Shown here piece after piece: positions 31,176 to 60,819 of a stretch of DNA of 64,000 nucleotides. Numbering within the stretch: the stretch's first letter is position 1; each line of letters starts with the position of its first letter. The position numbers were made by a program, and so were the translations under genes. The stretch is from Amphiscolops sp. MND2022 (Eukaryota): the NCBI GenBank assembly GCA_964187785.1, contig OZ076421.1, positions 54,002,001 through 54,066,000 of the forward strand, written 5' to 3'. The notes beneath the pieces are model-generated. The model saw only the letters and a program-made list of their open reading frames with translations. It did not search any database and was not told the DNA's origin.

Positions 31176-32206
31176 TAAAGACCTAAATCAGAAAGCTCGG
31201 TTCCGAGTTTTTGTCAGTGCCAAAAAAAATTGGTCTAGAGTCCATAATATAAAATGAAGAATCGATACTTCCGAGCTATCCCACTGAAGTTGCTAATGGT
31301 TGTTACGACATTACCAGACTTATCCCGGTAACGATCTAGGGGGATTTTTGTCCAATCAAAGCGCGAATATTGTATTGGAAGATTTACACTTGTCACACAT
31401 TACTCGCATTGATAGGACGTTACACTAGCTGACAAATCAAATTTGTTTTGGTTCAACAAGTTGCGGACGATAACTTTTTGATCAGGAGTTAATGTTTAAC
31501 ATCGATAAGTGTCTGGATGAAGAGCAATAACTTTTTAAGGACTGTTTTAGCAAGGAATCATACTCAGCAAAATGTTGACGGGTGGTTGAGTCTATCTAGA
31601 AAATGAAAGTTTTGTAATTAACTGGACATTTGTGATACCATGGCTCAGCAAAGTGGAGAGGTGAGAGATTGCGATGACAATCATTAAAAGAAGCAGTGGA
31701 GTTTTACTAATTTGATTTAGAAAGTCGAATAAATCCTTCCCAAATATTGTCAATTGGTTTAAAGATTATACACTTTGCAGTTATTTGACGGTAGCAGTTA
31801 AACGCATGTCCTAGGTTTTTATATGATCAAGCGGTTTTACTGCAAAAAAAGAGAGATTGGTTTCACCTCGCTCGTCGTACTCGTGTTTAAAGATGTCGCA
31901 GCCAGCTCCTTGGTGTTATGGGTTTGAACGCGAATACAATTGAATTCACTGCGATGAACGGATGGAAAAGATTTTTGTTACGTCATCAAGACGACTATGC
32001 TAGCAATACTTTAATATATGAAATGATTTTGTGACGTCACTAAGTATAGAGTTGGAATGATTATCTCAAGCTTGCTGTAACGTCTCCGTCAGGGCTTGGC
32101 TAGCAATAGCTAACCTTAATACACACAGAGACACTACGTTGCAATCGTCAAATTGTCTTCCTTAATACGAAGATTTAGGCACTACAGTCTGTGTATAACG
32201 TACCGT

Positions 32207-35200
32207 CTTGCAAAGTGCGCTCCATCGACGTTTACGCTATTTTGAAGCAGTCCTTAAAACTTGTTTTCACAGAGATTTAAACTACTCAATGGAAGAAGTC
32301 AGTAAACCTGCAATTCGACCATATTTATCATATAACCTATCAATGGCACTGGTCTCGGTTTCTAAATCATGACAGGCTAAGTAGATTTGAGCGTTTCCAA
32401 TGCTTGGAAAACCTGGTTTGAAGATGGCATTATGTTCGGTATTCTTCATCTTCTTCGTTTTCATCTATTCCCATTTTCCATAATAGTTTCGGTATACTAT
32501 TATTGCGATTGGGTGTAGTAGAACCCTTTTTCATTCCGGTCCTAATTATCTTCTTCCGAAAAACCTGTTTTGCGCAATAAAATGTCAAACCAGTCGCTAA
32601 CAAAAGTTTCGTCTAGTGTGCCCGCTTGTCCGTAAAGTTTCTTTAAATTGATATTGTATCGTGCTTTGAATCATCTAGGAAACCCCTACTTGGCGCAAAG
32701 TTCGTAATTTCAATTGATCGTAAAATAATATTTGCCTGTTGTGGAATAAGGTCACCCGTAAGAACCTTTTTTCTGGGTCTCATTTGAACAAATCAACTCT
32801 AAAGCGATTTATCAACATATTGATATGCGCTCTGTTTGTATCTTTTCTTCCGTATCTCATTCTTCAGATAAATTAGCTGATGAGATATAAAAAAGTTTAC
32901 TTTATTCTTGAGAATGGTAGAAACAGTTGGCAAATTGTGCTGCTTACCAATCATTGCCTTTGTTCCTTGTTGTGCTTATCGTTTTCAAAATCCTTGATAA
33001 TAGCGAATTATTGATGACATTGGCAAATCAAATGCGTTTTTGGTCATTTGGCTTGACAATGGAATTTCAGCGTTTCAATAGAAACAAGGTGCATGAAGCG
33101 TGTTAATGTAATTTGAAAAAGCATGTGAAGTACGTGATGTTTTTTGTTACATATGAATTTTATTCACCAACAGTGTATTGACGAATCAGGTCACGCTTCA
33201 TCAACGCGCGATGCTTGCATAGTGTGCTACATCGGGGTTTACGCTATATCGAAGCAATCCTTAAAACTGGTTTTCACAGAGAATTAAACTACTCAATAGA
33301 AAAAAGTCCGTAAACCTGCAATTCGACCATATTTATCCTGTAACCTATCAATGGCACTGGTCTTGGTTTCTAAATTATGACAGGCTAAATAGGTTTCAAG
33401 CGTTTCCAATGCTTGGAAAATCTGGTTCGAAGATGGCAATAGAATCGGTATTCTTCATCTTCTTCGTTTTCATCTATTCCCATTTTCATAGTAGTTTCGA
33501 AATACTATTATTGCGATTGGGTGTAGTAGAACTCTTTTTCATCCCAGTCCTAATTATCTTCTCCGAAAATCCTGTTTTGCGCAATAATTTGTCAAACCAG
33601 TCGCTAGCAAAAGTTTCGTCTAAAGTGCCCGCTTGCCCGTAAAGTTACTTGAAATTGATATTATATCGTGCTTTGATTCATCTAGGAAACCCCTACTTGG
33701 CGCAAAAATTGTAATTTCAAACGATCATAAAAATATTTGCCTGTTGTGGAATAAGGTCACCCGTAAATATTTTTTTCTGGGTCTCATTTGAACAAACTAT
33801 CTCAAAAGCGATTTATCAACATATTGATATGCGCTCTGTTTGTATCTTTTCGCCCGTATCTCATTCTTCAGATAAATTAGCTGATGAGATATAATAGTGT
33901 CTACTTTATTCTTAAGAATGGTAGAAACAGTTGGCGACGTGTGCTTCTTATCAATCATTACCTTGGTTCCTTGTTGTGCTTTTTGTTTTCGTAATCCTTG
34001 ATAATAGCGAATTATTGGTGATTTTGGCAAATCAAATGCGTTTTGGTCATTTGGCATTGCGCCTGACAATGGAATTTCAGCGTTTCAATAGCAACAAGGT
34101 GTATGAAGTGTGTTAATGTAATTTGAAAAAGAATTTGAAGTACGTGATGTTTTTTGTTACAAATGAAGTTTATTCACGAACAGTGTATTGACGAATCAGG
34201 TCACGCTTCATCAACGCGCGATGCTTGCAAAGTGCGCTACATCGGGTTTACGCTCTATCGAAGCAATCCTTAAAACTGGTTTTTACGGAGAATTAAACTA
34301 CTCAATAGAAAAAAGTCCGTAAACCTGCAATTCGACAATATTTATCCTATAACCTACCAATGGCACTGGTCTTGGTTTCTAAATCATGACCGGCTAAATA
34401 GGTTTTAAGCGTTTCCATTGCTTGGAAAACCTGGTTTGAAGATAACATTATGTTCGGTTTTCTTCATCTTCTTCGTTTCATCTATTCTTATTTTCCATAG
34501 TAGTTTCGGTATACTGTTATTGCGATTGGGTGTAGTAGAACTCTTTTTCATCCCAGTCCTAATTATCTTCTTCCAAAAAACCTGTTTTGCGCAATAATTG
34601 GTCAAACCAGTCGCTAGCAAAAGTTTCGTCTAAAGTGACCGCTTGCCCGTAAAGTTTCTTGAAATTGATATTATATCGTGCTTTGAATCATCTAGGAAAC
34701 CCCTACTTGGCGCAAAAATTGTAATTTCAAACGATTATTAAAAATTTTTGCCTGTTGTGGAATAAGGTCACCCGTAAATATTTTTTTCTGGGTCTCATTT
34801 GAACAAACTAACTCAAAAGCGATTTATCAACATATTGATAGGCGCTCTGTTTGTATCTTTTCTTCCGTATCTCATTCTTCAGGTATATTAGCTGATGAGA
34901 TATCAACAATTTTACTTTATTCTTGAGAATGGTAGAAACAGTTGGCAAATTGTGCTTCTTAACAATCATTGCCTTAGTTCCTTGTTGTGCTTATCGTTTT
35001 CGTAATCCTTGATAATAGCGAATAATTGGTGATTTTGGCAAATCAAATGCGTTTTTGGTCATTTGGCATTGCGCCTGACAATGGAATTTCAGCGTTTCAA
35101 TAGAAACAAGGTGCATGAAGCGTTTTAATGTAATTTGAAAAGCATGTGAAGTACGTGATGTTTTTTGATACAAATGAATTTTATCCACCAACAGTGTATT

Positions 35201-38200
35201 GACGAATCAGGTCACGCTTCATCAACGCGCGATGCTTGCAAAGTGTGCTACATCGGGGTTTACGCTGTATCGAAGCAATCCTTAAAACTGGTTTTCACAG
35301 AGAATTAAACTACTCAATAGAAAAAGGTCCGTAAACCTGCAATTTGACCATATCTATCCTATAACCTATCAATGGCACTGGTCTTGGGTTCTAAATTATG
35401 ACCGGCTAAATAGGTTTCAAGCGTTTCCAATGCTTGGAAAACCTGGTTCAAAGATGGCATTATATTCGGTATTCTTCATCTTCTTCGTTTTCATCTATTC
35501 CCATTTTCCATAGTAGTTTCGGTATACTATTATTGCGATTGGGTGTAGTAAAACTCTTTTTCATCCCAGTCCTAATTATCTTCTTCCGAAAAACCTGTTT
35601 TGCCCAATAATTTGTCAAACCAGTCGCTAGCAAAAGTTTCGTCTAAAGTGCCCGCTTGCCCGTAAAGTTTCTTGAAATTTATATTATCTCGTGCTTTGAA
35701 TCATCTAGGAAACCCTTTCTTGGGGCAAAAATTGTAATTTCAAACGATCATAAAAACTATTTGCCTGTTGTGGAATAAGGTCACCCGTAAATATCTTTTT
35801 CTGGGTCTCATGTGAACAAACTAACTCAAAAGCGATTTATCAACATATTGATAGGCGCTCTGTTTGTATCTTTTCTTCCGTATCTCATTCTTCAGGTAAA
35901 TTAGCTGATGCGATATAAAAAATTTTACTTTATTCTTGAGAATAGTAGAAACAGTTGGCAAATTGTGCTTCTTAACAATCATTGCCTTAGTTCCCTGTTG
36001 TGCTTATCGTTTTCGTAATCCTTGATAATAGCGAATTATTGGTGACTTTGGCAAATCAAATGCGTTTTTGGTCATTTGGCATTGCGCCTGACAATGGAAT
36101 TTCAGCGTTTCAATAGAAACAAGGTGCATGAAGCGTGTTAATGTAATTTGAAAAAGCATGTGAAGTACGTGATGTTGTTTGTTATAAATGTATTTTATTC
36201 ACCAACAGTGTATTGACGAATCAGGTCACGCTTCATCAACTCGCGATGCTTGCAAAGTGTGCTACATCGGGGTTTACGCTATATCGAAGCATTCCTTAAA
36301 ACTGGTTTTCACAGAGAATTAAACTACTCAATAGAAAAAAGTCCGTAAACCTGCAATTCGACCATATTTATCCTATAATCTATCAATGGCACTGGTCTTG
36401 GTTTCTAAATCATGACCGGCAAAGTAGGTTTCAAGCGTTTCCAATGCTTGGAAAACCTGGTTCAAAGATGGCATTATATTCGGTATTCTTCATCTTCTTC
36501 GTTTTCATCTATTCCCATTTTCCATAGTAGTTTCGGTATACAATTATTGCGATTGGGTGTAGTAGAACTCTTTTTCATCCCAGTCCTAATTATCTTCTTC
36601 CGAAAAACCTGTTTTGCGCAATAATTTGTCAAACCAGTCGCTAGCAAAAGTTTCGTCTAAAGTGCCCGCTTGCCCGTAAAGTTTCTTGAAATTGATATTG
36701 TATCGTGCTTTGAATCATCTAGGAAACCCCTATTTGGCGCAAAATTTGTAATTTCAAACGATCGTAAAAAAATATTTGCCTGTTGTGGAATAAGGCCACC
36801 CGTAAATATAATTTTTCTGGGTCTCAATTGAACAAACTAACTCAAAAGCGATTTATCAACATATTGATATGAGCTCTGTTTGTATCTTTTCTTCCGTATC
36901 TCATTCGTCAGGTAAATTAGCTGATGAGATATTAAAATTTCTACTTTATTCTTTGAGAATGGTAGAAACAGTTGGCAAATTGTGCTTCTTAACAATCATT
37001 GCCTTAGTTCCTTGTTGTGCTTATCGTTTTCGTAATCCTTGATAATAGCGAAATATTGGTAATTTTGGCAAATCAATTGCGTTTTTGGTCATTTGTCCTT
37101 GCGCCTGACAATGGAATTTCAGCGTTTCAATAGAAACAAAGTGCATGAAGCGTGTTAATGTAATTTGAAAAAGCATGTGAAGTACGTGATGTTTTTTGTT
37201 ACAAATGAGTTTTATTCACCAACAGTGTATTGACGAATCAGGTCACGCTTCGTCAACGCGCGATGCTTGCAAAAAGCGCTACATCGAGGTTTACGCTATA
37301 TCGAAGCAATCCTTAAAACATGTTTTCACAGAGAATTAAACTACTCAACGGAACAAAGTCCGTAAACCTGCAATTCGACCATAATTATCCTATAACCTAT
37401 CAATGGCACTGGTCTTGGTTTCTAAATCATGACCGGCTAAATAGGTTTCAAGCGTTTCCAATGCTTGGAAAACCTGGTTCGAAGATGGCATTATATTCGG
37501 TATTCTTCATCTTCTTCGTTTTCATCTATTCCCACTTTCCATAATAGTTTCGGTATACTATTATTGCAATTGGGTGTTGTAGAACTTTTTTTCATCCCAG
37601 TCCTAATTATCTTCTTCCGAAAAACCTGTTTTGCGCAAAAATTTGTCAAACCAGTCGCTAACAAAAGTTTCGTGTAATGTGCCCGCTTGCCCGTAAAGTT
37701 TCTTAAAATTGATATTGTATCGTGCTTTGAATCATCTAGGAAACCCCTACTTGGCGCAAAATTTTTTTTTATTTCAAACGACCGTAAAAAATATTTGCTT
37801 GTTGTGGAATGATGTCACCCGTAAATAATTTTTTTCGGGGTCTCATTTGAACAAATAAACTCTAGAGCGATTAATCAACATATTGATATCCGCTCTGTTT
37901 AAATATTTTCTCCCGTACTCATTCTTCAGATGATATAGCTGATGAGATGTAATAATTTCTACTTTATTCTTAAGAATGGTAGAAACAGTTGGCAAATTGT
38001 GCTTCTTAACAATCCATGCCTTAGTTCTTTGTTGTGTTTTTTGTTTTCGTAATCCTTGATAATAGCGACTTATTGGTGATTTTGGCAAATCAAATGCGTT
38101 TTTGGTCTTTTGGCAATGCGCCTGACAATGGAATTTCAGCGTTTCAATAAAAACAAGGTGTATGAAGCGTGTTAATGTATTTTGAAAAAGCATGTGAAGT

Positions 38201-41200
38201 ACGTGATGTTTTTTGTTACAAATGAATGTTATTCACCAACAGTGTATTTACGAATCAGGGCACGCTTCATCAACGCGCGATGCTTGCAAAGTGTGCTAAA
38301 TCGGGGTTTACGCTATTTTGAAGCAGTCCTTAAAACTTGTTTTCACAGAGATTTAAACTACTCAATGGAAGAAGTCAGTAAACCTGCAATTCGACCATAT
38401 TTATCATATAACCTATCAATGGCACTGGTCTCGGTTTCTAAATCATGACCGGCTAAATAGGTTTGAAGCGTTTCCAATGCTTGGAAAACCTGGTTCGAAG
38501 ATGGCATTATATTCGGTATTCTTCATCTTCTTCGTTTTCATCTATTCCCACTTTCCATAATAGTTTCGGTATACTATTATTGCAATTGGGTGTAGTAGAA
38601 CTCTTTTTCATCCCAGTCCTAATTATCTTCTTCCGAAAAACCTGTTTTGCACAATAATTTGTCAAACCATTCGCTAACAAAAGTTTCGTGTAATGTGCCC
38701 GCTTGCCCGTAAAGTTTCTTGAAATTGATATCGTATCGTTCTTTGAATCATCTAGGAAACCCCTACTTGGCGCAAAATTTGTAATTTTAAACGATCGTAA
38801 AAAAAATTTGCCTGTTGTGGACTAAGGTCACCTGTAAATATTTTTTTTCTGGGTCTCATTTGGACAAACTAACTCAAAAGCGATTTATCAACATATTGAT
38901 ATGCGCTCTGTTTGTATTTTTTCTTCCGTATCTCATTCTTCAGGTAAATTAGCTGATGAGATATAAAAATTTCTACTTTATTCTTTGAGAATGGTAGAAA
39001 CAGTTGGCAAATTGTGCTTCTTAACAATCATTGCCTTAGTTCCTTGTTGTGCTTATCGTTTTCGTAATCCTTGATAATAGCGAATTATTGGTGATTTTGG
39101 CAAATCAAATGCGTTTTTGGTCATTTGGCATTGCGCCTGACAATGGAAATTCAGCGTTTCCATACAAACAAGGTGTATGAAGCGTGTTAATGTAATTTGA
39201 AAAAGCATGTGAAGTACGTGATGTTTTTCGTTACAAATGAATTTTATTCACCAACAGTGTATTGACGAATCAGGTCACGCTTCATCAACGCGCGATGCTT
39301 GCAAAGTGCGCTACATCGGGGTTTACGCTATATCGAAGCAATCCTTAAAACATGTTTTCACAGAGAATTAAACTACTCAATGGAACAAAGTCAGTAAACC
39401 TGCAATTCGACCATATTTATCATATAACCTATTAATGGCACTGGTCTCGGTTTCTAAATCAGGACCGGCAAAAAATGTTTTAAGCGTTTCCAATGCTTGG
39501 AAAACCTGGTTTGAAGATGGCATTATATTCGGTATTCTTCATCTTCTTCGATTTCGTCTCTTCCCATTTTCCATAATAGTTTCGGGATATTATTATCGCG
39601 ATTGGGTGTAGTAGAACCCTTTTTCATCCCAGTCCTAGTTATCTTCTTCCAAAAAACCTGTTTTGCACAATAATTTGTCAAACCAGTCGCTAACAAAAGT
39701 TTCGTCTAATGTGCCCGCTTGCCCGTAAAGTTATTTGAAATTGATATTGTATCAAGCTTTGAATCACCTAAGAAACCCCTACTTGGCGCAAAGTTTGTAA
39801 TTTCAAGCAATCGTAAAAAAATTATTGCCTGTTGTGGAATAAGGTCACCCGTAAAAAAACTTTTTCTGTGTCTCATTTGAACAAACCAACGCTAAAGCGA
39901 TTTATCAACATATCGATATGCGTTCTGTTTATATCTATTCTCCCGTATCTCATTCTTCAGATAAATTAGCTGATGAGATATAATAATTCTAATAATTTCT
40001 AATTTGTTCTTAAGAATGGTAGAAACAGTTGCCAAATTGTGCTTCTTAACAATCATTGCCTTAGTTCCTTGTGCTTATCGTTTTCGTAATCTTTGATAAT
40101 AGCGAATTACTGGTGACTTTGGCAAATCAAATGCGTTTTTGGTCATTTGGCATTGCGCCTGACAACGGAGTTTCAGCGTTTCAATAGAAACAAGGTGTAT
40201 GAAGCGTGTTAATGTAATTTGTAAAAACAGGTGAAGTACGTGATATTTTTTGTTACAAATGAATTTTGATCATCAACAGTGTATTGACAAATCATGTCAC
40301 GCTTCATCTATGCGCGATGCTTGCAAAGTGCGCTACATCGGGGTTTACGCTATATCGAAGCAATCCTTAGAACATGTTTTCACAGAGAATTAAACTATTC
40401 AATGGAACAAAGTCAGTAAACCTGCAATTCGACCATATTTATTATATAACCTATCAATGGCACTGGTCTCGGTTTCTAAATCAGGACCGGCTAAAAATGT
40501 TTTAAGCGTTTCCAATGCTTGGAAAACCTGGTTTGAAGATGGCATTATGTTCGGTATTCTTCATCTTCTTCGTTTTCATCTCTTCCCATTTTCCATAATA
40601 GTTTCGGGATACTATTATCGCGATTGGGTGTAGTAGAACCCTTTTTCATCCCAGTCCTAATTATATCTTCCGAAAAACCTGTTTTGCGCAATAATTTGTC
40701 AAACGAGTTGCTAACAAAAGATTCGTCTAATGTGCCCGATTGCCCGTAAAGTTTCTTGAAATTAATATTGTATCGTGCTTTGAGTTATCTAGGAAACCCC
40801 TACTTGGCGCAAAGTTTGTAATTTCAAGCGATCGTAGAAAATATTTGCCTGTTGTGGAATAAGGTCACCCGTAAATTTTTTTTCTGGGTCTCATCTGAAC
40901 AAACCAACTCTAAAGCGATTTATCAACATGTTGATATGCGTTCTGTTTATATCGTTTCTCCCGTATCTCATTCTTCAGATAAATTAGCTGATGAGACATA
41001 GTTATTTCTACTTTATTCTTAAGAATGGTAAAAACAGTTGGCAAATTGTGCTTCTCAACAATCATTGCCTTAGTTCCTTGTTGTGCTTTTCGTTTTCGTA
41101 ATACTTGATAATAGCGAATTTTTGGTGATTTTGGCAAATCAAATGCGTTTTTGGTCATTTGGCATTGCGCCTGACAATGAACTTTCAGCGTTTCAATAGA

Positions 41201-44200
41201 AACAAGGTGTATGAAGCGTGTTAATGTAATTTGAAAAAGCATGTGAAGTACGTGATGTTTTTTGTTACAAATGAACTATGTTCACCAACAGTGTATTGAC
41301 GAAGCAGGTCACGCTTCATCAACGCGCGATGCTTGCAAAGTGCGCTACATCGGGGTTCACGCCATATCGAAGCAATCCTTAAAATTTGTTTTCACAGAGA
41401 ATTAAACTACTCAATGAAAAAAAGTCAGTAAACCTGCAATTCGACCATTGTTATCATATAACCAATCAAATGGCACTGGTCTCGGTTTCTAAATCATGAC
41501 CGGCTAAATAGGTTTCAAGCGTTTCCAATGCTTGGAAAACCTGGTTTGAAGATGGCATCATATTCGGTATTCTTCATCTTCTTCGTTTTCATCTATTCCC
41601 ATTTTCCATAATAGTTTCGGTATACTATTATTGCAATTGGGTGTAGTAGAACCCTTTTTCATCCCGGTCTTAATTATCTTCTTCCGAAAATCCTGTTTTG
41701 CGCAATAATTTGTCAAACCAGTCGCTAACAAAAATTTCGTCTAATGTGCCCGCTTGTCCGTAAGTTTCTTGAAATTGATACTGTTTCAAGCTTTGAATCA
41801 CCTAGGAAAACCTATTTGGCGCAAAGTTTGTAATTTCAAGCAATCGTAAAAAAATATTTGCCTGTTGTGGAATAATGTCACCCGTAAAAAAACTTTTTCT
41901 GTGTCTCATTTGAACAAACCGACGCTAAAGCGATTTATCAACATATTGATATGCGTTCTGTTAATATCTTTTCTCCCGTATCTCATTCTTCACATAAATT
42001 AGCTAATGAGATATAATAATTTCTACTTTATTCTTAAGAATGGTAGAAACAGTTGTCAAATTGTGCTTCTTAACAATCATTGCCTTAGTTCCTTGTTGTG
42101 CTTATCGTTTTCGTAATCCTTGATAATAGCGAATTACTGGTGACTTTGGCAAATCAAATGCGTTTTTGGTCATTTGGCATTGCGCTTGACAATGGAATTC
42201 CAGCGTTTCAAAAGAAACAAGGTGTATGAAGCGTGTTAATGTAATTTGAAAAAGCATGTGAAATACGTGATGTTTTTTGTTACAAATGAATGTTGTTCAC
42301 CAACAGTGTATTGACGAAGCAGGTCACGCTTCATCAACGCGCGATGCTTGCAAAGTGCGCTACATCGGGGTTTACACTATATCGAAGCAATCCTTAAAAT
42401 TTGTTTTCACAGAGAATTAAACCACTCAATGGAAAAAAGTCAGTAAACCTGCAATTCGACCATTGTTTTCATATAACCAATCAATGGCACTGGTCTCGGT
42501 TTCTAAATCATGACCGGCTAAATAGGTTTCAAGCGTTTCCAATGCTTGGAAAACCTGGTTTGAAGATGGCATTTTATTCGGTATTCTTCATCTTCTTCGT
42601 TTTCATCTATTCCCATTTTCCATAATAGTTTCGGTATACTATTATTGCAATTGGGTGTAGTAGAACCCTTTTTCATCCCGGTCCTAATTATCTTCTTCCG
42701 AAAACCCTGTTTTGCGCAATAAATTGTCAAACCATTCGCTAACAGAAATTTCGTCTAATGTGCCCGCTTGTCCGTAAGTTTCTTGAAATTGATATTGTAT
42801 CAAGCTTTGAATCACCTAGGAAACTCCTACTTGGCGCAAAGTTTGTAATTTCAAGCAATCGTAAAAAAATATTTGCCTGTTGTGGAATAATGTCACCCGT
42901 AAAAAAACTTTTTCTGTGTCTCATTTGAACAAACCGACGCTAAAGCGATTTATCAACATATTGATATGCGTTCTGTTAATATCTTTTCTCCCGTATCTCA
43001 TTCTTCACATAAATTAGCTAATGAGATATAATAATTTCTACTTTATTCTTAAGAATGGTAGAAACAGTTGTCAAATTGTGCTTCTTAACAATCATTGCCT
43101 TAGTTCCTTGTTGTGCTTATCGTTTTCGTAATCCTTGATAATAGCGAATTACTGGTGACTTTGGCAAATCAAATGCGTTTTTGGTCATTTGGCATTGCGC
43201 TTGACAATGGAATTCCAGCGTTTCAAAAGAAACAAGGTGTATGAAGCGTGTTAATGTAATTTGAAAAAGCATGTGAAATACGTGATGTTTTTTGTTACAA
43301 ATGAATGTTGTTCACCAACAGTGTATTGACGAAGCAGGTCACGCTTCATCAACGCGCGATGCTTGCAAAGTGCGCTACATCGGGGTTTACACTATATCGA
43401 AGCAATCCTTAAAATTTGTTTTCACAGAGAATTAAACCACTCAATGGAAAAAAGTCAGTAAACCTGCAATTCGACCATTGTTTTCATATAACCAATCAAT
43501 GGCACTGGTCTCGGTTTCTAAATCATGACCGGCTAAATAGGTTTCAAGCGTTTCCAATGCTTGGAAAACCTGGTTTGAAGATGGCATTTTATTCGGTATT
43601 CTTCATCTTCTTCGTTTTCATCTATTCCCATTTTCCATAATAGTTTCGGTATACTATTATTGCAATTGGGTGTAGTAGAACCCTTTTTCATCCCGGTCCT
43701 AATTATCTTCTTCCGAAAACCCTGTTTTGCGCAATAAATTGTCAAACCATTCGCTAACAGAAATTTCGTCTAATGTGCCCGCTTGTCCGTAAGTTTCTTG
43801 AAATTGATATTGTATCAAGCTTTGAATCACCTAGGAAACTCCTACTTGGCGCAAAGTTTGTAATTTCAAGCAATCGTAAAAAAATATTTGCCTGTTGTGG
43901 AATAAGGTCATCCGTAAAAAATCTTTTTCTGTGTCTCATTTGAACAAACCGACGCTAAAGCGATTTATCAACATATTGATATGCGTTCTGTTAATATCTA
44001 TTCTCCCGTATCTCATTCTTCAGATAATTTAGTTGATGAGATATAATAATTTCTACTTTATTCTTAAGAATGGTAGAAACAGTTGGCAAATTGTGCTTCT
44101 TAACAATCATTGCCTTAGTTCCTTGTTGTGCTTATCGTTTTCGTAATCCTTGATAATAGCGAATTACTGGTGACTTTGGCAAATCAAATGCGTTTTTGGT

Positions 44201-47200
44201 CATTTGGCGTTGCGCTTGACAATGGAATTCCAGCGTTTCAATAGAAACAAGGTGTATGAAGCGTGTTAATGTAGTTTGAAAAAGCATGTGAAGTACGTGA
44301 TGTTTTTTGTTACAAATGAATGTTGTTCACCAACAGTGTATTGACGAAGCAGGTCACGCTTCATCAACGCGTGATGCTTGCAAACTGTGCTACATCGTGG
44401 TTTACGCTATATCGATGCATTCCTTAAAACATGTTTTCACAGAGAATTAAACTACTCAATAGAACAAAGTCAGTTAACCTGCAATTCGACCATATTTATG
44501 ATATAACCTATCAATGGCACTGGTCTCGGTTTCTAAATCATGACCGGCTAAAGAGGTTTCAAGCGTTTCCAATACTTGGAAAACCTGGTTTGAAGATGGC
44601 ATTATATTCGGTATTCTTCATCTTCTTCGTTTTCATCTCTTACCGTTTTCCATAATAGTTTCGGTATACTATTATTGCGATTGGGTGTAGTAGAACCCTT
44701 TTTCATCCCAGTCCTAATTATCTTCTTCCAAAAAACCTGTTTTGCGCATTAATTTGTTAAACCAGTCGCTAACAAAAGTTTCGTCTAATGTGCCCTCTTG
44801 CCCGTGAAGTTTCTTGAAATTGATATTGTATCGTGCTTTGAATCATCTAGGAAACCCCTACTTGGCGCAAAGTTTGTAATTTCAAGCAATCGTAAAAAAA
44901 ATATTTGCCTGTTGTGGAATAAGGTCACCCGTAAAAAATTTTTTTCTGTGTCTCATTTGAACAAACCAACTCTAAAGCGATTTATCAACATATTGATATG
45001 CGTTCTGTTTATATCTCTTCTCCCATATCTCATTCTTCAGATAAATTAGCTGATGAGACATAATAATTTCTATTTTATTCTTACGAATGGTAAAAACAGT
45101 TGGCAAATTGTGCTTCTTAACAATCTTTGCCTTAGTTCCTTGTTGTGCTTTTCGTTTTCGTAATACTTGATAATAGCGAATGTTTGACGATTTTGGCAAA
45201 TCAAATGCGTTTTTGGTCATTTGGCATTGCGCCTGACAATGGAATTTCAGCGTTTCAGTAGAAACAAGGTGTATGAAGCGTGTTAATGTAATTTGAAAAA
45301 GCATGTGAAATACGTGATGTTTTTGTTACAAATGAATGTTATTCACCAACAGTGTATTGACGAATCAGGTCACGGTTCATCAACCCGCGATGCTTGCAAA
45401 GTGCGCTACATCGGGGTTTACGCTATATCGAAGCAATCCTTAAAACTTGTTTTCACAGAGAATTAGGCTACTCAATGGAAAAAAGTCAGGAAACCTGCAA
45501 TTCGACCGTATTTATCATATAACCTATCAATGGCACTGGTGTCGGTTTCTAAATCATGACCGACTAAATAGGTTTCAAGCGTTACCAATGCTTGGAAAAC
45601 CTGGTTCGAAGATGGCATTATATTCGGTATTCTTCATCTTCTTCGTTTTCATCTATTCCCACTTTCCATAATAGTTTCGGTATACTATTATTGCAATTGG
45701 GTGTAGTAGAACTCTTTTTCATCCCAGTCCTAATTATCTTCTTCCGAAAAACCTGTTTTGCGCAATAATTTGCCAAACCAGTCGCTGGCAAAAGTTTCGT
45801 CTAAAGTGCCCGCTTGTCCGTAAGTTTCTAGAGATTGATATTGTATCGTGCTTTGAATCATCTAGGAAACCCCTACTTGGCGCAAAGGTTGTAATTTCAA
45901 ACGATAGTAAAATAGTATTTGCCTGTTGCGGAATGATGTCACCCGTAAATAATGTTTTTCTGGGTCTCATTTGAACAAATCAACTCTAAAGCGATTAATC
46001 AACATATTGATATCCGCTCTGTTTAAAAATTTTCTCCCGTATCTCATTCTTCAGATAAATTAGCTGATGAGATGTAATAATTTCTACTTTATTCTTAAGA
46101 ATGGTAGAAACAGTTGGCAAATTGTGCTTCTTAACAATCATTGCCTTAGTTCTTTGTTGAGCTTTTTGTTTTCGTAATCCTTGATTAAAGCGAATTATTG
46201 GTGAGTTTGGCAAATCAAATGCGTTTTTGGTCATTTGGCATTGCGCCTGACAATGGAATTTCAGCGTTTCAATAGAAACAAGGTGTATGAAGCGTGTTAA
46301 TGTAATTTGAAAAAGCATGTGAAGTATGTGATGTTTTTTGTTACAAATGAATGTTATTCACAAACAGTGTATTTACGAATCAGGGCACGCTTCATCAAGG
46401 CGTGATGCTTGCAAAGAGAATTAAACTACTCAAAGGAACAAAGTCAGTTAACCTGCAATTCGACCATGTTTATGATATAACCTATCAATGGCACTGTTCT
46501 CGGTTTCTAAATCATGACCGGCTAAATAGGTTTCAAGCGTTTCCAATGCTTAGAAAACCTGGTTTGAAGATGGCATTATTTTCGGTATTCTTCATCTTCT
46601 TTGTTTTCATCTATTCCCATTTTCGACAATAGTTTCGGTATACTATTATTGCAATTGGGTGTAGTAGAACTCTTTTTCATCCCAGTCCTATTTAACTTCT
46701 TCCGAAAAACCTGTTTTGCGCAATACTTTGTCAAACCAGTCGCTGGCAAAAGTTTCGTCTAAGGTGCCCGCTTGTCCGTAAGTTTCTTGAAATTGATATT
46801 GTATCGTGCTTTGAATCATCTAGGAAACCCCTCCCTACTTGGCGCAAAGTTTGTAATTTCAAACGATAGTAAAATATTATTTGCCTGTTGTGGAATGATG
46901 TCACCCGTAAATAATGTTTTTCTGGGTCTCATTTGAACAAATCAACTCTAAAGCGATTAATCAACATATTGATATCCGCTCTGTTTAAATATTTTCTCCC
47001 GTATCTCATTCTTCAGATAAATTAGCTGATGAGATGTAATAATTTCTACTTTATTCTTAAGAATGGTAGAAACAGTTGGCAAATTGTGCTTCTTAACAAT
47101 CATTGCCTTAGTTCTTTTTTGAGCTTTTTGTTTTCGTAATCCTTGATTAAAGCGAATTATTGGTGAGTTTGGCAAATCAAATGCGTTTTTGGTCATTTGG

Positions 47201-50200
47201 CATTGCGCCTGACAATGGAATTTCAGCGTTTTAATAGAAACAAGGTGTATGAAGCGTGTTAATGTAATTTGAAAAAGCATGTGAAGTATGTGATGTTTTT
47301 TGTTACAAATGAATGTTATTCACAAACAGTGTATTTACGAATCAGGGCACGCTTCATCAAGGCGTGATGCTTGCAAAGTGTGCTACATCGGGGTTTACGC
47401 TATATCGAAGCATTCCTTAAAACATGTTTTCACAGAGAATTAAACTACTAAATGGAACAAAGTCAGTTAACCTGCAATTCGACCATATTTATGATATAAC
47501 CTACCAATGGCAGTGGTCTCGGTTTCTAAATCATGACCGGCTAAATAGGTTTCAAGCGTTTCCAATGCTTAGAAAACCTGGTTTGAAGATGGCATTACAT
47601 TCGGTATTCTTCATCTTCTTTGTTTTCATCTATTCCCATTTTCGACAATAGTTTCGGTATACTATTATTGCAATTGGGTGTAGTAGAACTCTTTTTCATC
47701 CCAGTCCTATTTAACTTCTTCCGAAAAACCTGTTTTGCGCAATACTTTGTCAAACCAGTCGCTGGCAAAAGTTTCGTCTAAGGTGCCCGCTTGTCCGTAA
47801 GTTTCTTGAAATTGATATTGTATCGTGCTTTGAATCATCTAGGAAACCCCTCCCTACTTGGCGCAAAGTTTGTAATTTCAAACGATAGGAAATTAATATT
47901 TGCCTGTTGTGGAATGATGTCACCCGTAAAAAATTTTTTTCTGGGTCTCATTTGAACAAATCACCTCTAAAGCGATTATTCAACATATTGATATCCGCTC
48001 TGTTTAAATATTTTCTCCCGTTTCTCATTCTTCAGATAAATTAGCTGATGAGATGTAATAATTTCTTCTTTATTTTTAAGAATGGTAGAAACTGTTGGCA
48101 AATTGTGCTTCTTAACAATCATTGCCTTAGTTCTTTGTTGTGCTTTTTGTTCTAGTAATCCTTGATTAAAGCGAATTATTGGTGAGTTTGGCAAATCAAA
48201 TGCGTTTTTGGTCATTTGGCATTGCGCCTGACAATGGAATTTCAGCGTTTCAATAGAAACAAGGTGTATGAAGCGTGTTAATGTAGTTTGAAAAAGCATG
48301 TGAAGTACGTGATGTTTTTTGTTACAAATGAATGTTATTCACAAACAGTGTATTTACGAATCAGGGCACGCTTCATCAAGGCGTGATGCTTGCAAAGTGT
48401 GCTACATCGTGGTTTACGCTATATCGAAGCATTCCTTAAAACATGTTTTCACAGAGAATTAAACTACTCAATGGAACAAAGTCAGTTAACCTGCAATTCG
48501 ACCATATTTATGATATAACCTATCAATGGCACTGGTCTCGGTTTCTAAATCATGACTGGCTAAATAGGTTTCAAGCGTTTCCAATGCTTAGAAAACCTGG
48601 TTTGAAGATGGCATTATATTCGGTATTCTTCATCTTCTTTGTTTTCATCTATTCCCATTTTCGACAATAGTCTCGGTAAAGTAAAGATTCGCATTGTTTT
48701 CCATTTCCGGAATTGAAGTTGGTAGCTGATCGTCATCATGTTACACTTCTTCAATTTTTTCATCACATAAAATACCCTCAACATCGGGGATGACTTTAGT
48801 AATAATACCTTCTCCGAAACAATTCTTTGTAGTCGAAACCCAAATCTTCTGCTGCCAAACTGTTTTCAGAAGAAATGGAGCATCCAGTAAAATAATATCC
48901 GTCTCGTGTATGTTATTGCAGGTTATTGCAGTATATCGACGTAAGTGCAGAGCAGTCTTGTGAGGATGTTTTAAACACTTAATGATGTCCATGTCCATGT
49001 GTCGGCATGTACTTGTTACATTCGATGGCAGAAAAAGCCACTTCACATTTTGCGATTGATCATGGGGATGTGCAGAAAAATTATTGAGAAACAGCAGCAC
49101 TTTTCTATTTGTACACCCTTTGCCCTACCGAAGCGTTGTAAACTTCCAGCAAAAACATGGGCATCCACCCAGGCTTTTGTCTGTGAATAATATTTGACAG
49201 AAATACGAGCCTGTTTAAAAGCCCTGGGGGTTTTCTAATTGCCGATTTAACAAAAATGCAATATTTCTCCAGCCATAGACACACCAACAAGAACCGTCGC
49301 CCTTTGTTTTTTAGTTCCCTGCCCCCTCTATTTTCTATCTATGGCTGCCTCTGCAGTGATATACAACGCGTATTGCGATTGGGTCTAGTAGAACATTTTT
49401 TCATCCCAGTATCAAAAATCTTCTTCCGAAAAATTTGTTTTGCGCAATAAAATGTCAAACCAGTCGCTAACAAAAATTTCGTCTAATGTGCCCGCTTGTC
49501 GGTAAAGATTCTCGAAATTGCTATTGTATCGTGCTTTGAATCATCTAGGAAACCCCTACTTGGCGCAAAGTTTGTAATATTACACGATCGTAAAAAATAT
49601 TTACCTGTTGTGGAAAAAGGTCACCCGTAAATAATTTTTTTCTGGGTCTCATTTGAACGAACTAACTCGAAAGCGATTTATCAACATATTGATATTCGCT
49701 CTGTTTATATCTTTTCGCTACTTTATTCTTTGAGATTGGTAGAAACAGTTGGCTAATTGTGCTTCGTAACAATCATTGCCTTAGTTCCTTGTTGTGCTTG
49801 TCGATTTCGTAATCCTAATTTTATTCACCAACAGTGTATTGACGAATCAGGTCACGCCTCATCAACGCGCGATGCTTGCAAAAAGCGCTACATCGGGGTT
49901 TACGCTATATCGAAGCAATCCTTAAAACATGTTTTCACAGAGAAATAAACTACTCAATGGAACAAAGTCGGTAAACCTGCAATTCGACCGTATTTATCAT
50001 ATAACCTATTAATGGCACTGGTCTCAGTTTCTAAATCAGGACCGGCTAAATAGGTTTGAAGCGTTTCCAGTGCTTGGAAAACCTGGTTCGAAGATGGCAT
50101 TATATTCAGTATTCTTCATCTTCTTCGTTCTCACCTATTCCCACTTTCCATAATAGTTTTGGTATACTATTATTGCAATTGGGTGTAGTAGAACTCTTTT

Positions 50201-50896
50201 TCATCCCAGTCCTAATTGTCTTCTTCCGAAAAACCTGTTTTGCGCAATAAATTGTCAAAACAGTCGCTAACAAAAATTTCGTCTAGTGTGCCCGCTTGTC
50301 TGTGAAGATTCTCGAATTTGCTATTGTATCGTGCTTTGAATCATCTAGGAAACTCCTACTTGGCGCAAAGTTTTTAATTTCAAACGAAAGGAGAATAATA
50401 TTTGCCTGTTGTGGAATAAAGTCACCCGTAAATAATTTTTTTTCTGGGTCTCATTGGAACAAATCAACTCTAAAGCGATTTATCAACATATTGATATGCG
50501 CTCTGTTTAAATCTTTTCTCCCGTATCTCATTCTTCAGATAAATTAGCTGATGAGATGTAATAATTTCTACTTTATTCTTGAGAATGGTAGAAACAGTTG
50601 GCAAATTGTGCTTCTTAACAATCATTGCCATATTTCCTTGTTGTGCTTATCGTTTTCGTAATCCTCGATAATAGCGAACTATTGGTGATTTTGGCTAATC
50701 AAGTGCGTTTTTCATCATTCGGCATTGCGCCTGACAATGGAATTTCAGCGATTCAATAGAAACGAGGTGTATGAAGCGTGTTAATGTAACTTGAAAAAGC
50801 ATGTGAAGTACGTGGTGTTTTTTGTTACCAATGAATTTTATTCACCAACAGTGTATTGACCAATCAAGTCACGTTTCATCAACGCGCGATACTTGC
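32207..50896 (-). repeat. Tandem array of 18 units of ~1007-1022 bp (unit 15 is 962 bp, unit 17 is 1486 bp)
   Basis: Junction motif ...GATG-CTTGC-AAAG at 33214, 34224, 35235, 36249, 37266, 38283, 39298, 40320, 41332, 42347, 43362, 44377, 45393, 46408, 47370, 48389 and 49875. Confidence 0.96.
48679..49370 (-). pseudogene. pogo/Tigger DDE_1 transposase catalytic segment, present only in unit 17
   Basis: TVLVGVSMAGE...IG..KTPRAFK..VKYYSQTKAWVD..VF, then LLFLNNFSAHP...NVKWLFLPSNVTSTCRHMDMDIIKCLK. This matches the pogo pattern DNAPAHP / FLPPNTTS..QPMDQGII. Stops and frameshifts present. Confidence 0.88.
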
Positions 50897-51285
50897 GCAA
50901 CAAACGGCAATGCGCGTCACGCGTGACGCAAGACGCAATTACGTCGTAACAACAGTTGCTTTGTAATTTCACAGTAAATTTCAGACAAAGTATAAGACAA
51001 CAAAAGTTGAGACAAGCATGTTCTGTAGATCTAGCGAAAGTTTTCATTTCTCTTCGAAGAGCTTGAAAACTTGAAGTTTTCGAAGAGCATATAGCTTCGC
51101 CTAAAATCTGGAAAAACATTGTGGTCTATTTTATAGAATTCAGAACTTCTGTGCAACTAAGCATAATTTTTTAAGAGTCGATAGGTAACATGGAACATCA
51201 GCGATGCGATGTTTGCCGATGTAAAAATTGCAAAAAGTTATCTAGAGACGAAATTCTGATGTTTTTTTGAAACAAACTCTGATGC

Positions 51286-51536
51286 GTCACAGTCCGCTCC
51301 TGGACTGGCTTGCTCATATCGACGAATACAATTCGGAAGGGGACACTGATGCCTAATGAAAGCTAAGTACTGTTGGAATTATTCAGTTCAAACAAAACTA
51401 AACAAACTGAAGTCAATTCAACAAGTTAACTTGGGAATATCTCCTAAATCTAATTTTGAAACAATAAGGTGAAAGAACTAAAACTATCAGGTCTAAAAAA
51501 CGTCATTGTAGACGGACTGCTGAACTTTTGAACAAG
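51286..51536 (+). repeat. ~250-bp direct repeat copy 1 (probable retroelement ORF end plus spacer)
   Basis: Highly similar to 53033-53280; encodes HSPLLDWLAHIDEYNSEGDTDA*. Confidence 0.75.
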
Positions 51537-53032
51537 GTAGAAGAAAGAAAAGCTGAGAAGATAAACCCCCGATAGAAATACAGATAGACAACACATAAAA
51601 ACACTAACTCGAAAGTAGTGGATCCACTGCAGTCGACTACACTTCAGACGCTATGTGACTTCCGAGGCCCACCACTTGTCATCTTGACAGCGTTACCACC
51701 AAAGAAATCGCGATCATCAGCAACTACAAAAGACAACATGAAACAAGGGCTCAATGATTCAATCAAGCACATAATATACCACCAACTATCAAAACGCTTT
51801 CGAAGAACTTCCACAGATGCAGACGTTGACCTCGACGTCCCCCGTGTCAGCGGCGAAGGAGTACCCATACCAGCTAGAGCTTGCTAAGTTCTATCACTAC
51901 TGCTAATGTCATCCCCAGAAACACTTTCTTCATCTGATTTCGACGACAGCAGTTCGGCTAAATCTGAGAAAATCAACGCCACAATTCAGAACATACACAC
52001 GCAATAAAAAAAAGCTGTTTTAGTAAAATACTAACAACTAGCAAGCTGGACATCAAGTTTTACTAACCAGGACATGCAGGAACAACAGGTGCCTCAACCT
52101 CATTGGCCATAATGTCAGTTTCTGTTAGGCCATATTGAGTCTCCTCTCCACTAGCCATATTGCGCGACGTAAAAGATGCGAGATTGTTCCTCATTCATCA
52201 AACAACCGATCTAGAAAAGACAACATTAAGATCACGTTTTCGTCAAAGAGAAAAGTCAAACCAATAGGCGGTTGAAAAGTCAACACCTGCTTAGAAATTT
52301 AAATAGCCAATCAGAGTGAAGGGAAATCCATAAACCAAAGAAATCAATACTGACGATAAAATCAATACTCGAAAGTCAAAATAAAATGCAGTTAGTTGAA
52401 ACAAAATATAACCCCGCCATGGAATTCATCGAATTAATCGACTTTGTCTCGTCTTGCAAGACTGGGAAAGAAACAGAAGGTGAACCCTCTCAACTGTCAA
52501 AGACAAATGGAACTAGAAGAAGAGAAATATGCAACTCTTCAATCTCCTCACTAGACGTTAGAGTTAGCGGAGACCCTGAATTGGATTCATCCATGGAGAT
52601 AGTGTCATAGAACTGCAAAAGAATGAAACTCAACAGTAAAGAGAACAGCTTCTTTTGACTATTATCAAATAAAGAATTTCCCCCGTCTAACCCAGCAAGC
52701 CCGTCAAGTAAACCAGGATTCGTAGTTCAAGGGCAAGATTCGACGTCTTCAGACAATTACGAAGAAGAAGAGAGTGTTAGAAACACAAGACTTACTCGAA
52801 AGAAACCAAGAAAATTCAAGCTCTACAGGGTTCTTTATCACTCCTACGGGACCATTAGGTCAAACAGTGTTAAAAGAAAACAACTCACTTAACGATTTGA
52901 CTTACCCGAGACAGGTTGATTCTTCACGAAACCAACAAAAAACAAAGAGTGGAATCTCCCAACAAAACTGGTAGTATGACTATCCAATTTGCCCAGTCAA
53001 ACTCGGCGCTTTCGACCCATGACAGTGGCCCT

Positions 53033-53280
53033 GTCACAGTCCGCTCCTCGACTGGCTTGCTCATGTCGACGAATACAATTCGGAAGAGGACCCGGATGCC
53101 TAATGAAAGCTAAGTACTGTTGGAATTATTCAATTCAAACAAAACTAAACAAACTGAAGTCAATACAAGGTAACTTGGGAATATCTCTTAAATTTACTTT
53201 CAAAACAATAGTGTGAAATAACTGAAACTATCAGGTCTAAAAAACGTCATTGTAGACGGACTGCTGAACTTTTGAACAAG
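53033..53280 (+). repeat. ~250-bp direct repeat copy 2
   Basis: Highly similar to 51286-51536; encodes HSPLLDWLAHVDEYNSEEDPDA*. Confidence 0.75.
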
Positions 53281-53758
53281 AGGAAAAGTTGATAATCAGT
53301 AAGGACGGTCCATGCAACTCCAAAATGGAGTAGCTTCGGGCATCAACTAAACACACCAAAAAGGGTTTCTTGAAACAAAATACCAATGTCATGAATGATT
53401 TATACGTATCGGTTTATTTGAACAAACAATTACATTGAAAATACTCTAAATGGAATGGAGCCTAAGCCTGCCGCTCACTCAGCCGCGTGACTGACGTCAA
53501 AAATGATCATTCAGTATATGTATCTTAAATATACCCCCCAGTCAGCTGAATAACGCAGTAGTCGCACGACTATTTATTTACACTGAATTATTACTAGTGC
53601 CGCTTACATTAATGAATGAATTATGTCACTACTACGTCGTAGTTACCTACAGGAAAGGAACGAAGCTTACGTCACGACTATGTCACGCCGTACATATAAT
53701 GAATGAAGCTGGCGTTAATATTGAATTATTGACCAGGATTGAACTAGAATATGAACAA

Positions 53759-53880
53759 ACGTCAACCTTACGTGGCACAATGACTAAACTGAAGATTCAA
53801 ATTTACATCAACGTTACGTCGCACAATGACTAAAACGAGGATTCAATTTTACGTCAACGCCACGTCAATCCTAACTAAAA
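53759..53880. repeat. ~2.5 x 46-bp tandem repeat in an ACGTCA-rich block
   Basis: Units start at 53759, 53805 and 53851. Confidence 0.75.
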
Positions 53881-54478
53881 TATAATTGTAATTAATTGAG
53901 AAAACATTCTGAAGAGTATGAAATAAGAGAACTTCCCAAGTGTTCCGTTTCGGAAGATAATTAACTATATGGCGCTTAATATTTATTAATGATTAAACAT
54001 AATTCATCTGTTGAAGTCGATATGTAATAATCATCTAATAAATGCAGTTGACATGTAGTGTTGGTTGATAAATGTTAACGATTTCTTAACGTCTTGCCCA
54101 CCATGGTCTCAGTGTAGTGCGCATGTGTATATATCTTTGTTTGTTTCGTGTTTCATAATTTTGTTGCAAATGAAAACCCATTTCATTTTTATTCTTAAAA
54201 AAACAAGATTTTCATGAAGGATTATAATTTCCCCACTTTTGAACTTTCCCTAGCATCACACAAATGGATGAGTCACCTTTGAGCTTCTCCTGTTTCGCAA
54301 ACAACTAGGTTTTCCTTTCCACTTTCCGGCAACATTTCATGATCATTTCCTTCGATTTCCATTTTTCCGCTCTTTGTGAAATCAAAGTTGGGTTATTTCG
54401 ATGAATATGAAACTAAGAAACCTCCTACTTCCGGTTCAATGACGTTTGTCACTCAAACATTTCTCCCTATTAAGGAAC

Positions 54479-54678
54479 NNNNNNNNNNNNNNNNNNNNNN
54501 NNNNNNNNNNNNNNNNNNNNNNNNNNNNNNNNNNNNNNNNNNNNNNNNNNNNNNNNNNNNNNNNNNNNNNNNNNNNNNNNNNNNNNNNNNNNNNNNNNNN
54601 NNNNNNNNNNNNNNNNNNNNNNNNNNNNNNNNNNNNNNNNNNNNNNNNNNNNNNNNNNNNNNNNNNNNNNNNNNNNNN
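54479..54678. other. Assembly gap (200 N)
   Basis: Run of N. Confidence 1.
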
Positions 54679-56412: not shown

Positions 56413-56548
56413 CCGCTGCTCAGCTATAACCAATCTTAATACGTACGGAGAATCTACGGAGCGAATTGTAAAATTGTATTCCGCCGCTCAGATATAACCA
56501 ATCCTCATACGTACGGAGCATCTACGGAGCGAAGTGTAAAATCACAAT
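56413..56548. repeat. 2 x 68-bp tandem duplication, probably within an interspersed repeat (~56240-57300)
   Basis: CCGC.GCTCAG.TATAACCAATC...TACGGAG...TACGGAGCGAA.TGTAAAAT at 56413 and 56481. Confidence 0.75.
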
Positions 56549-59945: not shown

Positions 59946-60237
59946 ATCTATCATTATACCAGACATTGAAAGCCGTTGCACCAAAGATAGCCAAGGAGCC
60001 AAACCTATCAGCGACGAGATGCCCAACAGTCCGAAGATGGCAATGCAAATCTTCTCAAACCTGAAAGTGCTAGCTTCAAAAGATCAACAGTGCTAATGTT
60101 GGAAAAGTGCTACCAAAATGATATACAATTTTCGAGCAGTAAGATCTAAGACAAAAATTGGAAATAACGTTTCTAGAACCCACTAAGTATGAAATTTTGC
60201 ATTCTCCTCGTTTGCCAAGGACAACAAACTACGGCCC

Positions 60238-60712: not shown

Positions 60713-60819
60713 GGCTTTCTTCGTTCTTTGGTTCGATGGTCCTGGAGTCGGTGTTTTCTCCCGAGTGAAATCTGCCGGCTTTGTTAATGGTTTTGAGGGC
60801 TCTTTTCGGATGTTCCATC

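Follow-up and report, generated by a model that had tools for sequence, protein, structure and literature searches.

A head-to-tail array of 18 units that probably grew inside a decayed pogo/Tigger-type transposon of Amphiscolops sp. MND2022

Results

The window, by which we mean the whole 64-kb stretch of DNA analyzed here, carries at 32207-50896 exactly 18 units of ~1016 bp arranged head to tail, as counted from CTTGC to CTTGC in the assembly, which together amount to 18.7 kb of repeat block. The array and its boundaries are as follows.

32207-50896, minus strand (transposase sense): tandem array of 18 units of ~1016 bp, bounded by alignment to the unit consensus
32207-32211, no strand: CTTGC, left array boundary and 5-bp microhomology, the exact start of unit homology
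50892-50896, no strand: CTTGC, right array boundary, the same five bases as in every internal junction and the exact end of unit homology

The commonest self-distances between 20-mers are 1009-1022 bp and are restricted to 32302-50860; one unit BLASTed against the window returns an unbroken head-to-tail series of matches over 32207-50896; and one and the same CTTGC joint is common to all 17 internal junctions. These observations bear out the 18 head-to-tail units of ~1.015 kb described in the original prediction and correspond to the long array of a single monomer (18 units over 18.7 kb) that is expected of a satellite. TRF with a longest period of 500 does not see the array. The units are 962-1021 bp long, except for a single long one at 48069-49721, and are 86-99% identical in pairwise comparisons (mean K2P 0.084), with unit-specific indels and no identical pair among the 18. 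Comparisons of the flanks with the unit on both strands never rose above shuffle level, and no unit copies occur elsewhere in the 64-kb window, confirming that the sequence past the last unit is unique with respect to the array. Pao/BEL retroelements are present in the surrounding sequence.

The minus strand of each unit encodes a broken pogo-type N-terminus followed by an acidic C-tail. The N-terminal remnant comprises, in order, CENP-B_N-like and HTH_Tnp_Tc5-like regions and the first residues of DDE_1, and the long unit in addition retains a DDE core.

44687-45172, minus strand: example of a broken pogo N-terminal remnant in a typical unit, with HTH1, HTH2, and the DDE_1 start (relatives' residues ~15-175), by tblastn with the transposase P0122
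48069-49721, minus strand: single long unit with the ancestral DDE core (~680-694 extra bases), by BLAST of the unit
48677-49370, minus strand: segment missing from the 17 short units through a ~680-bp deletion (end points between TCGG and TA and immediately before TATAC), by homology to L001, a second copy of the element described below
48744-49124, minus strand: open 127-aa DDE_1 piece with the second catalytic Asp replaced by Asn, by Pfam DDE_1 and alignment

In tblastn searches of the whole window with full-length pogo transposases, including P0122, residues 15-175 align to the units (E 1e-11) and residues 122-403 of the relatives to the long unit. An hhalign comparison of the unit ORFs with the N-termini of CENP-B_N-bearing relatives gives an E of 5.8e-6 and a probability of 85%. 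HMM positions 27-80 (CENP-B_N) are matched in several units and positions 82-157 (HTH_Tnp_Tc5) in many, with E down to 1e-6, and these matches are colinear across many units. The CENP-B_N domain is thus recognized through hhalign and the HMM positions rather than by Pfam directly, and HTH_Tnp_Tc5 through tblastn and the HMM positions, its best direct Pfam match (E 0.086) falling below threshold. Pfam's generic HTH models stay below threshold on every single open unit piece, and Pfam searches with single unit ORFs yield chance-level matches only. The match of the unit to CENP-B in the PDB reaches an E of only 0.5, a protein-atlas feature search gave no usable match (best score 0.76), and the unit ORF alignment, used in a word-indexed protein search, retrieved no ORFs other than those of the window itself.

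For the catalytic region, Pfam DDE_1 scores 36.3 bits on 48744-49124 of the minus strand, above its cut-off of 22 (range on the long unit, 29-36 bits). A phmmer search with this piece gives 312 matches, and the relatives retrieved with it are proteins that combine CENP-B_N, HTH_Tnp_Tc5, and DDE_1. A pogo-type DDE_1 (DDD) domain is therefore present, but confined to a single unit out of 18. The HMM check proposed in the original prediction accordingly succeeds for DDE_1 on the long unit and fails for Pfam's own HTH models on single open pieces. The broken pogo-type domains on the minus strand are nevertheless real by the tblastn and hhalign statistics and, together with the DDE_1 match and the colinear HMM matches, support the postulated pogo origin. 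By these sequence affinities, the source element is best classified as a pogo/Tigger-type DNA transposon of the Tc1/mariner superfamily.

The segment at 48677-49370 is homologous to L001 9232-10319, and hence it is ancestral rather than an insertion; by the same comparison, the long unit preserves the ancestral form. No branch of the unit tree is longer than that leading to its right part (49371-49721). The loss of the catalytic core thus holds for 17 of the 18 units, which lost it through one ~680-bp deletion; the long unit still has the DDE_1 core.

The unit consensus already contains one stop and one frameshift. Since these are common to the units, the founder element was already dead. No unit whose frame persists to that point reads beyond codon 111, 11 of the 18 have a broken longest ORF, and substitutions are spread evenly over the three codon positions (113/114/103). 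The broken consensus and even codon positions differ from the open reading frame under purifying selection that marks a domesticated transposase. The units are therefore under no coding constraint and the array has decayed neutrally; the idea that the DNA-binding coding region was "kept" in any functional sense finds no support. The observed/expected CpG ratio in the array is 1.1, indicating no methylation footprint.

The ends of the parent element could be set by homology to L001, a solitary copy that is 77% identical to the array element, at 32185 and ~50943-50960.

32185-32206, minus strand: outer 22 bp of the element 3' end (3' TIR tip; TA followed by CAGT on the plus strand), outside the array, by L001 homology
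50897-50958, minus strand: outer ~47-62 bp of the element 5' end, outside the array and approximate in its end point, by L001 homology

The L001 homology spans the outer 22 bp, which have no unit match, and ends within ~3 bp of 32185. On the 5' side it reaches 50943, and a weak, imperfect TIR alignment extends to ~50956-50960. TA followed by CAGT lies at 32183-32188, where homology to this independent copy stops; the TA itself (32183-32184) adjoins the 3' end, the 5' end is not base-exact, and only the left end displays a TA duplication. No match emerged when the two flanks were compared directly for inverted repeats, and the imperfect TIRs, alike at ~22 of 31 positions and found in both copies, are weak (shuffle p 0.03-0.04), the ends having first been fixed by L001. 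These ends leave 22 bp of the 3' terminus and ~47-62 bp of the 5' terminus outside the array, which places the array inside one element, consistent with the suggestion that it grew there. The proposed left terminus is likewise upheld, and the right end predicted at 50963 is close to that found here.

L001 and the window share one assembly, with neighboring contig names and coverages of 103x and 104x; the idea that L001 is a copy in a related species was rejected on this ground, and it is a paralogue. A further candidate for independent support, L002, was discarded as the window itself. Nor are the two pogo loci duplicates of one region, the repeat they share (window 55747-57509, L001 12094-13818) being wrongly oriented for synteny.

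Divergence among the units increases with the distance between them: K2P is 0.063 between neighboring units versus 0.094 between those at least six units apart (Mantel r 0.51, with none of 2000 permutations as high). In the unit tree, which has a single coalescent root and a star-like structure, neighbors group into clades, and basal positions are taken by the long unit and the edge units. Two parts of the array are of more recent origin.

41012-44056, minus strand: recent sub-block of three units 96-99% identical, by pairwise identity and the unit tree
46088-48676, minus strand: recent sub-block of units 97-98% identical, extending into the long unit on its left side, by pairwise identity

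The junction is thus of single origin, and neighboring units are more alike than distant ones. In the sequencing reads, whose runs behave like DNA and for which depth was taken from read-derived contigs, the summed contig depth over the units is ~8-24x the single-copy depth (four runs; a rough measure). The DDE segment is single copy, being represented by one 753-bp contig with 0 differences, and the reads contain no further DDE-core copy at or above 90% identity. A depth corresponding to ~8-24 copies genome-wide suggests one local array, as opposed to the numerous arrays or elevated copy number expected of a satellite family. The conjecture of a young satellite family consequently fails on both counts, as the units differ by ~8% and the depth is that of no family.

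Discussion

Taken together, these features make it quite probable that the array arose by in-place duplication of a dead pogo element, grew by unequal exchange, and decayed neutrally, and that it is probably a functionless by-product. The starting point would have been a single inactive pogo/Tigger-type element of ~1.8 kb with its transposase sense on the minus strand. An in-place duplication would have joined two CTTGC motifs, one lying 22 bp inside the 3' end and the other ~50-60 bp inside the 5' end, and the resulting dimer would have reached 18 units through successive rounds of unequal exchange or slippage among neighbors. An early loss of the ~680-bp DDE core in one unit would then have allowed the short form to spread to 17 of the 18 positions, followed by neutral decay of an array that encodes no protein. 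The molecular pathway, microhomology-mediated duplication and then unequal exchange, is what we infer from the joint and the unit relationships. The same final structure would be expected from a double insertion followed by deletion across the junction, or from rolling-circle replication of a CTTGC-closed circle.

The former of these follows the double-insertion model of McGurk and Barbash 2018 (PMC5932611): two elements would have inserted head-to-tail at one site, a junction deletion healed at CTTGC would have removed the TIR tips, and unequal exchange would have expanded the dimer. Most hobo dimers have such junction deletions and the route has been proposed for Bari1 (PMC5932611), and the intact outer ends and identical junctions seen here fit it equally well. 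Yet it requires two events where one microhomology duplication is enough, and it calls for them in a family that seems nearly extinct and of low copy number, only one other copy (77% identical) having been found and the DDE core being single copy in the reads. The junction retains no vestige of a TA target site, and the single star-like coalescent root, as against two deep lineages, does not favor such an origin, which we therefore regard as rather unlikely.

A different view of the locus is that the array has been kept for a function, be it as a one-strand piRNA source, as an array of binding sites for a pogo-derived protein, or as centromere-associated chromatin. The surroundings are full of transposon relics and all units point in the same direction, as in many piRNA clusters, and in the case of Bari1 a piRNA or structural role is considered by McGurk and Barbash (PMC5932611). 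Against this, a search of the array for the CENP-B box, with one mismatch allowed, found no match, and the reads hold only about one array's worth of copies; the centromeric proposal thus finds no support at this single low-copy locus. The piRNA idea is weakened by the lack in the reads of any other DDE-core copy at least 90% identical that could serve as a small-RNA target. Neutral decay of the units to ~8% divergence and the CpG ratio also speak against maintenance. We accordingly consider a retained function unlikely, and quite improbable in the specific form of a one-strand small-RNA source or of an 18-copy sponge of subterminal binding regions for a pogo-derived host protein. If true, either form would represent an early stage of a partnership between a transposon protein and a repeat, like that of CENP-B and its box. 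The array shows no sign of function, and that it is a functionless by-product remains the most likely interpretation.

The second route to the same structure invokes an excised circle closed at CTTGC, which was copied by a rolling-circle mechanism into a concatemer that recombined into a resident copy. Such a mechanism was put forward for the Bari1 arrays by Marsano et al. 2003 (cited in PMC5932611 and PMC9659126), and the whole number of units between two partial ends that it predicts is seen here. However, the units of a concatemer made in one step should all be equally old, whereas neighbors are more alike and recent sub-blocks exist, and the one long unit among short ones demands later events; we view this route as very unlikely. 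An over-expanded repeat in the assembly is least credible of all. A contig end and scaffold gap (54407 and 54479) do lie at a distance of 3.5 kb from the array, but artefactual expansion yields identical copies, while these units differ by 1-14% with unit-specific indels. Moreover, the unique DDE segment and its right junction recur with 0-1 differences in the read contigs of two samples, and the unit depth of ~8-24x is consistent with ~18 copies.

Most transposon-derived satellites are recognized only once their origin is blurred. At this locus, the founding 5-bp joint, both ends of the parent, one ancestral long unit, and the gradient of similarity between neighbors all survive within 18.7 kb. 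Growth by in-place duplication and unequal exchange would make the locus a clear illustration of the route from dimer through unequal exchange to array that has been proposed for Bari1, hobo, and P, now in an element of the pogo family. The locus shows how a transposon becomes a tandem repeat and raises no new question. The reviews PMC9659126 and PMC12628747 contain no pogo-derived case among their transposon-derived satellites.

Comparison with known systems

Among known systems, those most similar to the array are the Bari1 arrays of Drosophila melanogaster and the P-related array of Drosophila guanche. In the P-related units of D. guanche, a reading frame for a repressor-like protein reportedly remains open, whereas the frames in the present array are disrupted already in the consensus and evolve free of constraint. 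As far as they are summarized in PMC5932611, which cites Miller et al. 1992, these units are likewise tandem copies of a DNA transposon that are missing ~100 nt of terminal sequence and some of the catalytic region while keeping the DNA-binding end. The Bari1 arrays, according to the account of Caizzi 1993 and Marsano 2003 in PMC5932611, also consist of head-to-tail copies of a cut-and-paste transposon of the Tc1/mariner superfamily, with identical junctions devoid of TIR sequence, partial elements at the array edge, and a location among other transposon relics, all of which recur here. In that same account, the Bari1 units are near-identical, near-complete, and present in ~80 copies, in contrast to units that are ~8% diverged and in 17 of 18 cases without the catalytic core. 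The present array further differs from Bari1 in deriving from the pogo family and in having both outer element ends visible on the flanks, so that it is seen inside one element.

CENP-B derives from the pogo/Tigger group. The CENP-B system and the array thus share a pogo/Tigger source element, and the relatives of the latter carry CENP-B_N. Unlike satellites with CENP-B boxes, the units have neither the box nor an intact DNA-binding ORF and are confined to one low-copy locus. More generally, the array accords with models of dimer expansion, whether by double insertion (PMC5932611) or by microhomology-dependent NHEJ followed by NAHR (reviewed in PMC9659126 and PMC12628747), in the passage from dimer through unequal exchange to array, in the spread of deletions within the array, and in the microhomology at the founding joint. 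These models are population-level or general, whereas the locus described here is a single fossil in which the 5-bp joint, the ancestral unit, and the outer ends can all still be read.

Structure and pogo origin of the array

The array comprises exactly 18 head-to-tail units when counted from joint to joint. Window-wide, 20-mer self-distances peak at 1009-1022 bp only within 32302-50860, and a single unit used as a BLAST query returns a gapless head-to-tail series of matches over 32207-50896; in the unit alignment, lengths range from 962 to 1021 bp and identity from 86 to 99%. A TRF run misses the array because its maximum period is 500. Aligned to the unit consensus, the array edges lose unit homology at CTTGC on both the left (32207-32211) and the right (50892-50896), and the same pentamer forms the joint at all 17 internal junctions. 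In the flanks, similarity to the unit does not rise above shuffle level on either strand. Together, the edge alignments, the common joint and the dissimilar flanks bear out the original description of 18 tandem units with unique sequence past the last one.

Features of the array and its paralogue
32207-50896, - strand: array of 18 pogo-derived units
41012-44056: recent block of units in the unit trees
46088-48676: recent block of units in the unit trees
48069-49721, - strand: long unit, containing a decayed core absent from the short units
L001 6621-10660: solitary decayed pogo paralogue, same assembly as the window

An open piece within 48677-49370, a stretch of the long unit that breaks the unit register, matches DDE_1 above the Pfam cut-off (29 bits in one run, 36.3 bits for a 127-aa piece), whereas single open pieces of the ordinary units give nothing significant, the best match being HTH_Tnp_Tc5 at E 0.086. 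A phmmer search with the DDE_1 piece against 1.84 billion representatives returned 312 proteins, 27 of them 440-600 residues long, and the pogo architecture of CENP-B_N, HTH_Tnp_Tc5 and DDE_1 is present in all four relatives checked. Run against the whole window, residues 15-175 of the relatives match ordinary units on the - strand (45172-44687, E 1e-11; also units at about 34.9, 40.0 and 41.0 kb) and residues 122-403 match the register-breaking stretch, with no match outside the array. When the 27 relatives are combined into a profile, it yields colinear matches in the natural open pieces of many units (positions 27-80, 84-126 and 124-157) and, in the unit majority consensus, matches in the order 27-79, 82-127, 124-157 and, weakly, 452-480; in a profile-profile comparison, the unit ORFs align to the N-termini of the relatives at E 5.8e-6. 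The probe, profile and profile-profile matches thus show that each unit is a pogo transposase gene lacking its core (roughly residues 160-450), with about 325 bp of untranslated sequence alongside. The - strand remnants of pogo-type HTH domains noticed in the first reading are confirmed by the residue 15-175 and profile-profile matches, and the consensus unit is likewise recognized as pogo by the colinear profile matches.

Ends of the element and the long unit

A 78-aa protein match (P0008) led to locus L001, where the same element occurs once, not in tandem, and is about 77% identical in nucleotide sequence. L001 is an old paralogue, since it comes from the window's own assembly; the neighbouring record of equal coverage, L002, is the window's own contig and is identical to window 38741-54407. 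A foreign insert of about 1.9 kb (7311-9232) splits the L001 copy, and the long unit has no counterpart to about 340 bp of that copy (9353-9697). Homology to L001 continues past the array by 22 bp on the left, ending at 32185, just inside the TA|CAGT terminus noted at first, and by 47 bp on the right, ending at 50943. This homology past both edges places the array inside one element, of which the last 22 bp at the 3' end and some 47-62 bp at the 5' end were left unamplified; amplification of the transposon between its own termini, as first proposed, is thereby supported. With the ends set by L001, weak and imperfect inverted repeats appear in both copies (about 22 of 31 positions, at a shuffle p of only 0.03-0.04); an unguided inverted-repeat search found none.

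A single deletion of about 680 bp (end points TCGG|TA ... |TATAC) sets the short units apart from the long one. The extra segment of the long unit is homologous to L001, and so is ancestral rather than an insertion. Frameshifts disrupt the DDE core of the long unit at several places, and Asn has replaced the second catalytic Asp. In read-derived contigs from two samples, the extra segment recurs with 0-1 differences at single-copy depth.

Decay and growth of the array

The founder element was dead before amplification, because the unit consensus carries an in-frame stop and a frameshift in the N-terminal region, and all units still open that far reach a stop by codon 111. Substitutions are even across codon positions (113/114/103) and the longest ORF is disrupted in 11 of the 18 units; decay after amplification was neutral. 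Mean K2P among units is 0.084, with 0.063 between neighbours versus 0.094 for units six or more apart (Mantel r 0.51; none of 2000 permutations as high). With L001 as the root, the unit trees take a star-like shape in which neighbouring units group into clades (units 2-5 with 7; 8-13; 14-16 with 6). Basal to these lie the units at the array edges and, on the longest branch, the right half of the long unit. A founding duplication and many small unequal exchanges after it, homogenizing the edges least, would be expected to leave such a pattern.

Judging by the single 5-bp joint, the founding event was probably a microhomology-mediated duplication (through template switching, or through end joining of sister chromatids), after which the array would have grown by unequal exchange; reviews describe this route (PMC9659126, PMC12628747). 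Two alternatives discussed for Bari1 (PMC5932611) are also compatible with the final structure, namely a double insertion with a later deletion at the junction, and rolling-circle copying from a circle that had closed at CTTGC; against the latter as a one-step concatemer counts the distance-dependent similarity of the units. The array is unlikely to be an assembly artefact, since all units differ from one another and reads support unit-specific sequence.

Genomic surroundings and possible function

The window, from an animal genome, is rich in transposons, and relics of Pao/BEL and gypsy-type retroelements lie on both sides of the array.

Other features of the window
229-8753, - strand: Pao/BEL-type LTR retroelement relic with broken ORFs (integrase core, Peptidase_A17, DUF1759 with aspartyl protease, zinc-knuckle gag-like)
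7077-7217: 23-bp tandem repeat, six copies, 94% matching
17794-26759: second large tandem repeat, about 2.6 copies of a 3.4-3.9-kb unit
51286-51479 and 53033-53223: direct repeat of about 190 bp, two copies, 91% identical
54479-54678: scaffold gap (N run), 3.5 kb right of the array
58564-62687: retroelement fragments, RVT_1 (+ strand) and Integrase_H2C2 (- strand)

In the second large repeat, identity is 99.7% between copies 2 and 3 (offset 3404 bp) and 92-99% for copy 1. Short repeats of 23-91 bp are nested within this repeat, and a protein family search on its ORFs found none. The 190-bp repeat has a read depth about 50-100 times single copy and many loose ends at 51286 and 51411-51448, and is therefore a high-copy short element (MITE or SINE-like). 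The array-bearing contig ends at 54407. A repeat family 71-78% identical between window 55747-57509 and L001 12094-13818 is found within a few kb of each pogo copy; its opposite orientation relative to them rules out synteny of the two loci.

A protein-coding role for the units was rejected in view of the consensus stop and frameshift, the disrupted ORFs and the even codon-position substitutions. The suggested centromeric role finds no support, since a search of the array found no CENP-B box and summed read depth over the units is, by a rough measure, only about 8-24 times single copy. CpG observed/expected is 1.1, and there is thus no methylation footprint.

Comparison with known transposon tandems

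Among known cases, this array comes closest to the Bari1 arrays of D. melanogaster, the P-related array of D. guanche, and those hobo dimers that carry junction deletions; each is a tandem of a DNA transposon whose junctions lack TIR tips (PMC5932611). The present locus is likewise a DNA-transposon array, here of the pogo family, and thus adds a pogo example to an already known type of tandem. Unlike those cases, it is old and decayed, and the joint that founded it, the two outer ends of the element and one long unit of the ancestral form can still be read in it.
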